Shown piece by piece: positions 59,182 to 64,000 of a stretch of DNA of 64,000 nt. Within the stretch, counting starts at the first letter, position 1, and the number at the start of each line of letters is the position of its first letter. The notes beneath the pieces were generated by a model. It worked only from the letters and a program-made list of their open reading frames with translations. It did not search any database and had not been told where the DNA came from. The stretch covers positions 6,882,001 to 6,946,000 of the forward strand of contig CP075494.1 of assembly GCA_021613535.1 (NCBI GenBank), read 5' to 3'. The DNA comes from Adineta vaga. Its lineage: Eukaryota; Animalia; Rotifera. The position numbers were made by a program, and so were the translations under genes.

Positions 59182-60268
59182 TAACATTTGTGCCCTTTTC
59201 TTGTACACATATTTGAAACAACAACAAGAATTATAAATAAAAAATAGTTTTCGTGTACGAAACTTAAGTCCAAGAAAAAAAATGCTAACAAAGATTTGAT
59301 AAACTATATCGATTTATAAATAGTGAAGAAATGTCCTTAAAAAGTAACGAGCATCAATGAAACATCTACCAATCTTGTGTGATTATTCATAATCAATAAA
59401 ACATGATTTTTGTTTGTCATTATCCCTTGGTAATTGCAGAAGCTTTCTTTTACTGATCGGATTATGTTTTGAAATGCATATTGAACAAAAGGGAAGACTA
59501 TTTATAGATCACACTGCTTAAAAGATATTACTTTCAGTTCGACGATCTAATTGAAGAGTTCAAATTTAGTTCGTTTAGTCATACACTAATAAGGATACCG
59601 ATTATTTACGATTGGATTTGTTCTTACAGTCTTTCGGTAGAAGTCTTAGTTATTATTGATCGTATTACTATACTGCCGTTTAAATCAGTTGATTGAGAAC
59701 ATGACGATAATTTTACAATTAGAAACATAGATAAGTTATTGAAATCATGTCATTTATCTGTCGTTACAAATATAAATTTACGTTTTTTTTTCACTTCAGA
59801 ACATATCTGGTACAGAAAGTTCTACTAGTTAGTAGAATGTGAATACACATGAATCAATAGTGTCAATATTTATATTTTCTGACTAATAATAATTCTGTAT
59901 TCTCGAAATTCTTCACAAAATTTTCATCTTTATCATCACGTCTGGGTTTTTTTTTATTGAGAAGAATGAATGCAATTTCTAAAACAAACAAACCAAGAAG
60001 AAAGGAAATGATACGACAGACAAGAAAGTCTAGTAAAGAAAATGACGATGCATATCATTCCAGACCATAGAAAATAGCAAATAATAAACTATAAGAGAAT
60101 AATATATCGTCATCAATTTGGTTGACTGACTGGCTGATCATGTGACATTTATATACAAAACAACATACATACACACATACATTCACATACATAAACAAAA
60201 AAAGATAGGATTAATATAGTTCATATACAAAAGACAAGAAAAACGATGTATGTTCTATTGAATATATA

Positions 60269-62059
<1,791 letters not shown>

Positions 62060-62079
62060 GGAGGTAATTTAGTTCATTA

Positions 62080-62566
62080 TTAGTCAACTTTTTTCGAAGA
62101 AGCGACGACGTTAGTAGTGGTTGATGTAGAATTTGGAATTAATTTATCTAATGAATTATGTGAACGTGATCGACCGTGCGATTCAAGATTCGAAGCTAGA
62201 AGAAAGAAATATGAATAGTAAAATCAATTAGTTTTTCGTTATTAGATGTTTCGAATCAAACTTTTGAAATCATTATATATAGATGATGTCAAAATGGAAT
62301 TCGATTTTAGTTTTTCGAGATGTTAGACTCCACACAATTAGAAAATAGAATTGTGCAGAAACACGATCTCGATCCTACTCAATTATGTTTTTAGACAATT
62401 CGATTAAAATAACTTACGTGTTTTAGATAGTTGTTGAGTAATACTATGTCCGTAACGATACCAAGCAAGAAAAATAGCAACAAGAGCAATGAATAACCAA
62501 ATAATTAAATAAGAAGTAAGACGAAATTCGAAATCGACCTCTATTTTTGAAGATATTTTGGTTTTT
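62080..62566 (-). CDS. Unannotated spliced ORF (exons 62418-62566, 62080-62195) encoding a single-pass membrane microprotein; no in-frame ATG
   Basis: Canonical GTAAGT...TTCTAG intron 62196-62417 keeps frame: (I)EVDFEFRLTSYLIIWLFIALVAIFLAWYRYGHSITQQLSKTPSNLESHGRSRSH...SSKKVD, ending in TAA TAA TGA. Confidence 0.6.
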
Positions 62567-62754
62567 CTGAAATAGATAATAGAATAAATTAAGAATATGT
62601 TCTGTGTTCATTCACAGCTGACCAGTTTCTATTTCGAATACAGTAGAAGAAGAAGAAGAAGAAGACAAAAACGAGAGAAAAGACAAACAAATTGACCACA
62701 CAAAAGAAACAAAAAACATTATACAGATGATAAGATGAAGTTTCTGCTTGAAAA

Positions 62755-63977
62755 TCAATCCATCGGTATATCGGCTTGTTCTTTTGTATAATTATTACTT
62801 TCTTTCATACTTCGTTGAATGTTTTCAAGAATACGTGTAGTTTCTTCATCATCATCAACATGAGCTTTTGTGGAATCAGTGTGTCGATCTGTATCATGAT
62901 TACTACCATTCGATTTTGAATGTTCAATAGGTGATCGTGAATCATGTCGATGACGATGATGTCGACGAGATGAAGAAGTTGGAGTTCGCGATCGAGAACG
63001 ACGATGACGACGTGATGAACCAGAACTAAATTAGAGAAAAACCAAAATATTTTACTCAACATTCTAGAGATTGATTTACCGTGATCGTTTATGGCGACGT
63101 CTATCACGTGAACGTGAACGTGATGATCGATAATTACGTGAATGTTTGGATGAACGATGTCCTGATCTAAAAAATAAATATTCTTATTGATGTTTATACG
63201 TTTTTTTTCGCTTTACCTTGATCGTGAACGTCTTCGATCTTTATCTCGACTGGAAACTTTTTTCGATCGACTACGACTTCGACTACGTTGAGATGATCGA
63301 TAATCTCGATTGTAATAATCGTTTCCATTTCGATCACCACGATCCTTCCTAGATGAGGATGATGCTGATGGTGAACTACAAAAAAATAAAATTAGTAGAA
63401 TAATTCTTTATCATTTCATCTTACCTTCGATGTGATTTTCTTTCCAATTCATATTTTTCATTGTATTCACCGACACGTTTCTGTAAATCAGCTAGTTTCT
63501 CACGTATTTGAATAAAACCCAAATGTAATTTTCCACCGAAATGATCAGCTAAACGACGATCATTATCATGGATACCTAAATAAGCTGAACACACTTCACA
63601 GACACGTAATTTCTGTTGTTGATAGGTTGATGCTGGCATTGTTGCACGAAATTCTTGTTCCGAATCGACTTTTGATTTTCGTAGTTCTTCAACTTCTTCC
63701 AATAATTTCATCGATTCATCAACTAAACCTTGTGCACCTAATTCTTCAGCTCTCGCTAATTTTGTACCAATATGTTCACCTAATTCATGAATTAAATTCA
63801 TCTAAAAACGAAGAAAAAGAAATTTTCTTCTCAAAAATCAACGCAAAAAGATAAAAACTATTTTACTTTTCGTGCTGCTTCTTCACCTAATTCTTCCTGA
63901 GTTTCTCGAAGTTTTCGTTTTGCAGTTTCAGTTTTTCGATCAGCTTCAGCAACAAATTGATTTAATATATCTAACGC
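62755..63977 (-). CDS. LUC7L2: LUC7-like U1 snRNP-associated splicing factor (LUC7L/LUC7L2 type), 3' part
   Basis: MPASTYQQQKLRVCEVCSAYLGIHDNDRRLADHFGGKLHLGFIQIREKL followed by RS-rich exons; stop at 62755-62757; 5' end outside window. Confidence 0.93.
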
Positions 63978-64000
63978 CTAAAATTCAAACAAAATCTTGT

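Follow-up and report, generated by a model that had tools for sequence, protein, structure and literature searches.

An AUG-less open reading frame for a candidate membrane microprotein in the trans-spliced leader of YY1 mRNA in bdelloid rotifers

In Adineta vaga, a bdelloid rotifer, a LUC7-like gene (LUC7L) and a YY1-like gene lie on the same strand with an interval of about 0.7 kb between them, and the question raised by this interval is whether two small exons without a single ATG can encode a protein of their own on the mRNA that also encodes YY1. The locus was analyzed within a stretch of 64,000 nucleotides, referred to here as the window (GenBank assembly GCA_021613535.1, contig CP075494.1, positions 6,882,001 to 6,946,000 of the forward strand); the interval is on the minus strand of the window and coordinates are counted from its first letter. 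An earlier note, made from the letters alone, had proposed that the interval hides an AUG-less open reading frame (ORF) for a membrane microprotein sharing a transcript with YY1, and had offered as an alternative that the exons form a C-terminus of LUC7L. The interval consists of the 3' untranslated region (UTR) of LUC7L and, after it, the 5' leader of the YY1 mRNA, which is trans-spliced and has two exons. As judged by comparison of related loci, this leader carries a genuine conserved protein-coding frame under purifying selection, and the explanation we favor, with moderate confidence, is that a membrane microprotein would be started at an AUA codon, with leaky scanning to YY1 on one trans-spliced mRNA.

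The RNA data consisted of assembled contigs of four runs from three studies, placed on positions 59800-64000 of the window. In all four runs the joint 62195|62418 was present and depth over the intron (62196-62417) was zero, and the contigs therefore represent RNA from which the intron had been removed. The exons and the canonical intron, joined into one open frame with a triple stop, were found at the coordinates given by the earlier note. Each run contained one contig covering both 61958-62195 and 62418-62566/62568, i.e. the leader exons together with YY1 coding sequence, which makes the small exons contiguous with the YY1 coding sequence. As had also been predicted, exon 2 runs on unspliced to the YY1 ATG, 20 nt after the first stop codon of the microprotein frame, the contigs being continuous in this region in the four runs.

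At the 5' end of exon 1 the contig of run X1 carried nine extra non-genomic letters, in RNA sense CTTACCAAG, followed by an ambiguous AG at 62568. These letters plus AG are identical to the 3' end of the spliced-leader (SL) exon, ACAACTTACCAAGAG then GT. When the genome was searched (six contigs, 100.8 Mb), this exon followed by GT was present in 44 copies as compared with 0 for the reversed control, and the copies are SL RNA genes with a conserved downstream body. The sequence 5' of 62566, for which the earlier note had considered an SL, an intron at 62622-62567 or a LUC7L exon, is accordingly the spliced leader. The bdelloid spliced leader is 23 nt long and is found on more than half of transcripts (PMC1925144). 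Since the SL exon has no ATG, the mature mRNA, made up of SL and both exons, is AUG-free before the stop of the microprotein frame.

The microprotein frame is open from the acceptor 62567 and comprises 80 codons counted from the ATA at 62544-62542. No ATG occurs in any frame of exons 1 and 2 until the ATG-AAC-TAA at 62077-62069. In shuffles of the same two exons, absence of ATG had a probability of P = 0.02, and a frame of any register remained open through both exons with P = 0.009.

With respect to conservation, exon 1 used in a word search retrieved one protein, P0001, an 85 amino acid Rotaria magnacalcarata entry described by NCBI as 'unnamed protein product, partial', which is 80% identical over exon 1 and whose gene lies 10 nt before a YY1 homologue. 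The A. vaga exons were searched separately, and P0001 was used for full-length searches. Searches with P0001 and an exon-by-exon profile against 1.84 billion representatives recovered only rotifer-type sequences; the profile search gave eight hits, all of them read-through ORFs or fragments of the microprotein ORF, and six of the loci behind these hits, when fetched, all displayed the LUC7-ORF-YY1 layout. The comparison finally comprised 12 loci, namely both A. vaga ohnologues, R. magnacalcarata and nine contigs of rotifers found in metagenomes or read assemblies (L010, L011, L014, L021-L024, L031 and L033), with pairwise identity in exon 1 of 90% or less. The second A. vaga ohnologue, C2 (L002), has the same order of LUC7L, two-exon leader and YY1; its frame is open and has lost 6 nt in frame. 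The first 12 nt of its exon 1 are identical to a loose end of run X5, ATAAAATCTATC, and this copy is therefore expressed as well. The bdelloid contigs in public metagenome and read-assembly collections carry prokaryote-style gene calls that read through splice sites and introns. The ATG-started N-terminal parts of P0002-P0010 were rejected as genomic read-through artefacts with inconsistent frames.

The architecture of the leader was the same at every one of the 12 loci. A pyrimidine tract and AG acceptor are followed by an A-rich stretch of 9-30 nt and then by AAA ATA GA(G/T), in which positions -3 and +4 are A and G; 43 codons lead to a phase-1 donor; the intron is 213-234 nt long; exon 2 ends in SKK[VLIF]D and the stop; and the YY1 ATG follows 10-61 nt after that stop. 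Exon 1 and the part of exon 2 up to the ORF stop are free of ATG at every locus, and all 12 have a mini upstream ORF (uORF) of the form ATG-NNN-stop 2-5 nt after it, in which the sense codon varies. The absence of ATG, the ATA in its strong context and the presence of a two-codon mini-uORF, each pointed out by the earlier note at the A. vaga locus, are seen in 11 further loci, and none of the orthologues has ATG in place of the ATA at 62542-62544. Just upstream the frame is closed in both A. vaga copies, the open genomic frame being 67 codons in C5, and C2 having TAG directly before the exon. From its occurrence in both ohnologues and in at least two families (Adineta, Rotaria), the arrangement is ancient within bdelloids.

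Codon-level selection was assessed with the exons taken separately and the split codon left out. The ratio of nonsynonymous to synonymous substitution rates (dN/dS) ranged from 0.20 to 0.46 over the 15 pairs formed by the first six loci. Across ten loci, exon 1 had 21/12/32 variable sites at first, second and third codon positions and exon 2 had 16/9/30, as compared with 8/12/24 in the first 32 codons of YY1 itself. The length of exon 2 from acceptor to stop differed only by multiples of three, while the lengths of the intron, the 5' leader and the spacer did not follow this rule. In exon 1 of ten loci the microprotein frame had 0 stops, as against up to five per locus in the other two frames (none in a few loci), and when the observed changes were placed at random the frame stayed open with P = 0.02-0.14 per pair. 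The helix remained hydrophobic despite many replacements, and the motifs AWYRYG (AWYRFG in one locus), HGRSRS and SKKxD were kept with synonymous changes. The hidden AUG-less membrane ORF on the YY1 transcript, as originally proposed, is upheld by the spliced contigs and by this codon-level selection across the loci; we infer translation of the frame, AUA as its start, the membrane topology and endoplasmic reticulum (ER) residence of its product, and a role for the mini-uORF.

The absence of AUG from the mature mRNA before the ORF stop makes the AUA the most likely start of the microprotein. Conservation of the peptide and of the nucleotides both begin at (T/A)CAAAAATAGAG, and ATA is rare among the other Ile codons of the ORF (6/62 in the first ten loci). 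Near-cognate codons, AUA included, can be started with initiator Met-tRNA, and some genes are started at non-AUG codons only (PMC5666671). The microprotein would thus be initiated at the invariant AUA with initiator Met-tRNA and at low efficiency, and the majority of scanning ribosomes would be expected to bypass it, since the leader has no AUG. Ribosomes that bypass the AUA would then meet the conserved two-codon mini-uORF as the first AUG, and the YY1 AUG would be reached by leaky scanning or by rapid reinitiation. The mini-uORF has A at -3 in every locus read and is followed by the YY1 AUG 1-52 nt later; in two loci (L009 and L011) its stop and the YY1 ATG share letters as TAATGG. That its presence is kept and its peptide is not suggests a role in gating or reinitiation.

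Several observations weigh against an AUA-started microprotein with leaky scanning to YY1. Synonymous divergence (dS) is modest (0.3-0.7) and the intron is conserved equally, which means that constraints at the nucleotide level act as well. As a control for the ATA codon, 8 of 21 degenerate codons that encode an invariant amino acid were also represented by a single codon across loci; invariance of ATA is therefore weak evidence when taken alone, and it was dropped as a proof of a special role. A conserved hairpin downstream of the AUA was sought and none was found. Several loci have other in-frame AUA, AUU, AUC or ACG codons upstream in the A-rich leader which are possibly usable as starts, and the most efficient near-cognates have been ranked CUG, GUG, ACG and AUU, with AUA not among them (PMC5666671). 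Finally, a contig that spans both ORFs is no proof of a single molecule carrying both.

The product is predicted to be a single-pass membrane microprotein with a short acidic N-terminus. The translations agree with the transmembrane (TM) helix and Ser/Thr tail described in the earlier note, and an AlphaFold2 model of the Rotaria orthologue consists of one long helix (residues 3-46), with a predicted local distance difference test (pLDDT) score above 90 in its core, and a disordered tail. As a single helix matches anything, no fold search was made with this model. The residues flanking the helix are acidic before it and basic after it, and from this charge distribution the C-terminal tail is probably cytosolic. 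Lysine is found at positions -3 and -4 from the C-terminus in all 12 loci, with synonymous AAA/AAG changes. The KKXX motif is the classical dilysine ER-retrieval signal, recognized by COPI, and functions only at a free cytosolic C-terminus. That it stands directly at the stop in 12 loci is an argument for termination at this point being of importance. The microprotein is a putative ER resident. The predicted product resembles Type I/III ER membrane proteins with KKXX in its dilysine end, its one TM helix and the order of acidic and basic charges around it, while differing from them in being far smaller than the classical examples.

With respect to protein families, Pfam TCTA (PF15128, T-cell leukemia translocation-altered protein family) was the only family matched by exon 1 in both A. 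vaga copies, with a best score of 22.1 bits (E 1.3e-4), and was the top or only match for four orthologous products; five relatives scored 11.8-18.8 bits. Every score (11.8-22.1) was below the gathering cut-off of 27 bits. The match always covered profile positions 24-55 of 92, i.e. the TM helix and the aromatic-Gly motif that follows it, and positions 1-23 and 56-92 were unmatched. A feature search of the ESM Atlas placed a TCTA cluster second (0.75), which we treat as a lead only, and the profile search from rotifer peptides against the 1.84 billion representatives recovered no TCTA proteins. Membership in the family was rejected on the grounds of a sub-threshold, partial match and no recovered members, and the microprotein may be called TCTA-like at most.

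The leader intron is itself conserved. Its mean pairwise identity in the first six loci was 76%, as compared with 77-84% for the exons and 53% for the 60 nt that precede the acceptor. RNAalifold predicted two hairpins of approximately 60 nt each, at 62372-62315 and 62305-62250, which are conserved in ten aligned loci. In a covariation control 92.4% of cells were paired, versus 29-53% when the partners were slid, and 12 hairpin pairs had double changes as compared with 5.0 in shuffles, none of 500 shuffles reaching the observed value. A 19-mer in the 5' arm of hairpin 1 (62372-62354) is invariant in the ten aligned loci. No Rfam family was matched over 61900-62900. The hairpins explain much of the constraint at the nucleotide level and leave the coding evidence untouched; they could be miRNA-like precursors, or elements controlling splicing or translation. 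The 5' arm of hairpin 2 also contains CCATTTT (62291-62297, minus strand), with its CCAT core kept in the ten aligned loci, a sequence that resembles the core motif bound by YY1 (CCAT). In vertebrates YY1 reportedly regulates its own gene through sites in its first intron. Repeated TCGA-containing motifs occur throughout exon and intron.

One alternative builds on the limits of assembled contigs and holds that two overlapping mRNAs were merged by assembly, YY1 having its own 5' end and the microprotein being AUG-less all the same. That a contig spans two genes is no demonstration of a single transcript, and bdelloid SL trans-splicing could resolve the units. The YY1 ATG follows the ORF stop by only 10-61 nt in the 12 loci, however, with no conserved AG acceptor or pyrimidine tract between the two, the contigs pass through this region unbranched in the four runs, and the zero depth of the intron speaks against an intronic start; we consider this alternative unlikely. 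A still less probable one is that the frame is untranslated and that exons and intron are kept as RNA or DNA regulatory elements of YY1. The lack of an AUG, the covarying hairpins in an intron conserved like the exons (76% versus 77-84%) and the TCGA-containing motifs shared by exon and intron would suit such elements. They would leave unexplained why substitutions track codon position with dN/dS below 0.5 in every pair, why frame-preserving indels are found inside the ORF only, why the microprotein frame has no stops in ten loci while the other exon 1 frames have up to five per locus (none in a few), why the hydrophobicity of the helix survives many replacements, and why KKXX stands exactly at the stop in 12/12 loci with AAA/AAG synonymous changes. 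The least credible proposal, which we regard as almost certainly wrong, is that of the earlier note in which a late LUC7L donor is joined to the acceptor 62567 and the exons provide an alternative, membrane-anchored C-terminus of LUC7L. In the copy studied the acceptor phase (1 nt completes the codon) does equal that of the last LUC7L intron. Across loci this phase is 0, 1 or 2 nt, which implies that no conserved in-frame part lies upstream, be it the spliced leader or a LUC7L exon; in C2, with no change in the phase of LUC7L, the exon begins in phase 0 and the fusion would run into TAA after one codon. The four RNA runs contained no such joint, and it is the spliced leader that is attached at this acceptor.

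A different kind of alternative retains the frame and changes the start, in that an enzyme of the ADAR type (adenosine deaminase acting on RNA) would convert the third A of the AUA (62542) to inosine in part of the transcripts and so create an AUG whose context would be perfect. If true, one trans-spliced mRNA would be toggled between an ER membrane microprotein and YY1. Among the Ile codons AUA alone can become a Met codon through A-to-I editing, and all 12 loci have it at this place; the target A is part of U-A-G, the preferred ADAR triplet. The genome contains an ADAR-type gene, a frame with a double-stranded RNA-binding motif and an A_deamin domain (L028:1084-2628, minus strand, equal to C6 ~10381948-10383492; 515 codons, 41 bits for the RNA-binding motif and 174 bits for the deaminase), and the adenosine-deaminase domain is found at at least six further genome loci. 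The adjacent intron is unusually conserved, and when aligned sequences were paired by hand its block AATCGAATTCCATTTTGA was nearly complementary to the exon around the AUA, with C opposite the target A. Against this, the best duplex given by RNAduplex used that block in one locus only, and the target A was usually opposite U; the block instead pairs within the intron, in hairpin 2, with covariation support. The stability of exon 1 with the 5' part of the intron did not exceed that of shuffles (z = +1.15). A duplex of exon and intron, considered as the substrate for editing, did score z = -2 to -4 against simple shuffles, but was discarded since its partner varied between loci and no covariation was seen. 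All four RNA assemblies read A at 62542 and had no other letters over 62418-62568, although contigs would hide a minority form, and in no lineage was a genomic G present at the site. The evidence against editing is stronger than the evidence for it, and we regard editing as very improbable. Initiation at the AUA itself, with leaky scanning to YY1, remains the reading we prefer.

The coordinates of the features are collected in Table 1. The identity of the flanking genes was confirmed by a match of the exon 63424-63801 to Pfam LUC7 (124 bits) and of the zinc-finger exon 60272-60598 to PDB 1UBD, the YY1 zinc fingers (186 bits, one uninterrupted stretch). LUC7L contigs continue beyond 62622 and end at 62617/62607, which shows the candidate intron 62622-62567 of the earlier note to be unused and places the LUC7L 3' end only 40-50 nt before the SL acceptor. 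LUC7 lies upstream of the ORF on the same strand in 11/12 loci, the short Rotaria contig ending before that region. The spacing of LUC7L and YY1 is operon-like, both being on the same strand with the downstream gene trans-spliced; with respect to a LUC7L–YY1 polycistronic precursor, no listed RNA contig of the four runs bridged 62569-62606. A conserved block, TTCGAAATAGAAACTGGTCA, at 62619-62638 (minus strand) near the end of the LUC7L 3'UTR is common to the A. vaga C5 copy, L010, L011 and L014 and in part to the Rotaria contig, and may be part of the LUC7L 3'-end signal. In the (TCT)n tract of the same 3'UTR, at 62645 in plus-strand coordinates, 9 nt are missing from the X1 and X6 contigs, with single-base differences nearby, which looks like allelic or strain length variation. 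Over the zinc-finger exon of YY1 (60297-60518) run X6 also had a second contig, which showed 22 differences and probably represents the transcript of another strain or of the C2 ohnologue. In run X5 a single contig of low depth connects 62185 with 62492, the ends being non-canonical (AG..TG, plus strand); this is probably an assembly or template-switch artefact between repeated TCGA-rich motifs.

Table 1. Features of the LUC7L–YY1 interval and its borders, in window coordinates
Feature	Position	Strand	Remarks
LUC7-like gene, last coding exon	62755..63025	-	Exon start set by RNA joint 63025|63080; stop TGA 62757-62755
LUC7L 3'UTR	62607..62754	-	RNA contigs of runs X1 and X6 end at 62617/62607; (TCT)n tract and conserved block 62638-62619
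Outron	62567..62606	-	Pyrimidine-rich tract and TTTCAG acceptor for SL trans-splicing; contigs stop at 62566/62568 with non-genomic letters
YY1 mRNA leader exon 1, 149 nt	62418..62566	-	A-rich 5' part, ATA codon, TM-helix codons; ATG-free in 12 loci
ATA codon, proposed start	62542..62544	-	AAA ATA G context; same in 12/12 loci
Hydrophobic TM-helix codons (predicted), then AWYRYG motif	62461..62520	-	Translations; AlphaFold2 model of Rotaria orthologue
Leader intron, 222 nt, GTAAGT...TTCTAG	62196..62417	-	Spliced out in four RNA runs; two covarying hairpins
Leader exon 2, ORF part	62083..62195	-	Cytosolic-type tail (predicted): HGRSRS, Ser/Thr-rich stretch, SKKVD end (KKXX type, 62097-62083)
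ORF stop codons TAA TAA TGA	62074..62082	-	First stop at the same place in 12/12 loci
Two-codon mini-uORF ATG AAC TAA	62069..62077	-	First ATG of the mature mRNA; ATG-NNN-stop in 12/12 loci
YY1-like gene, first coding part	61621..62059	-	ATG 62059-62057; contiguous with leader exon 2

To our knowledge, animal mRNAs that encode two unrelated proteins are rare, and conserved proteins without any AUG start are rarer. AUG-less genes escape gene finders, and the microprotein ORF was unannotated or marked 'partial' in the collections searched. The arrangement sits on the mRNA of YY1, a master regulator, and offers a natural system for how the strength of a start codon sets the ratio of two proteins made from one mRNA. 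If the AUA reading is true, organisms with spliced leaders can keep true bicistronic messages. A literature search for bdelloid bicistronic, non-AUG or operon cases found nothing on point.

What is proposed here combines known kinds of arrangement, namely conserved non-AUG uORFs and leaky-scanning bicistronic mRNAs. Conserved uORFs of the former kind reportedly include the uCC of antizyme inhibitor/ODC mRNAs, which is initiated at AUU, and the uORF of GDP-L-galactose phosphorylase in plants, which is initiated at ACG. They are alike in that a peptide-conserving AUG-less ORF stands in the leader of a regulator and a near-cognate start lets most ribosomes pass; the rotifer case differs in its AUA codon, its trans-spliced mRNA and its second, minimal uORF, and in a product that looks like a stand-alone membrane protein and not a sensor peptide acting within the ribosome. 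The P/C mRNA of Sendai virus, with its ACG start, is a leaky-scanning bicistronic mRNA. There too the upstream cistron is free of strong starts and ribosomes reach the downstream ORF, whereas the rotifer ORFs are non-overlapping and 20 nt apart with a conserved uORF, and the upstream cistron has no AUG of its own. Genes translated only from a non-AUG codon include EIF4G2/DAP5 (GUG), TEAD1 (AUU) and the yeast genes GRS1 (UUG) and ALA1 (ACG) (PMC5666671). Like the frame described here, each encodes a conserved protein whose sole start is a near-cognate codon in good context; those are main ORFs, while in the rotifer such a frame would be the upstream cistron of a two-protein mRNA.

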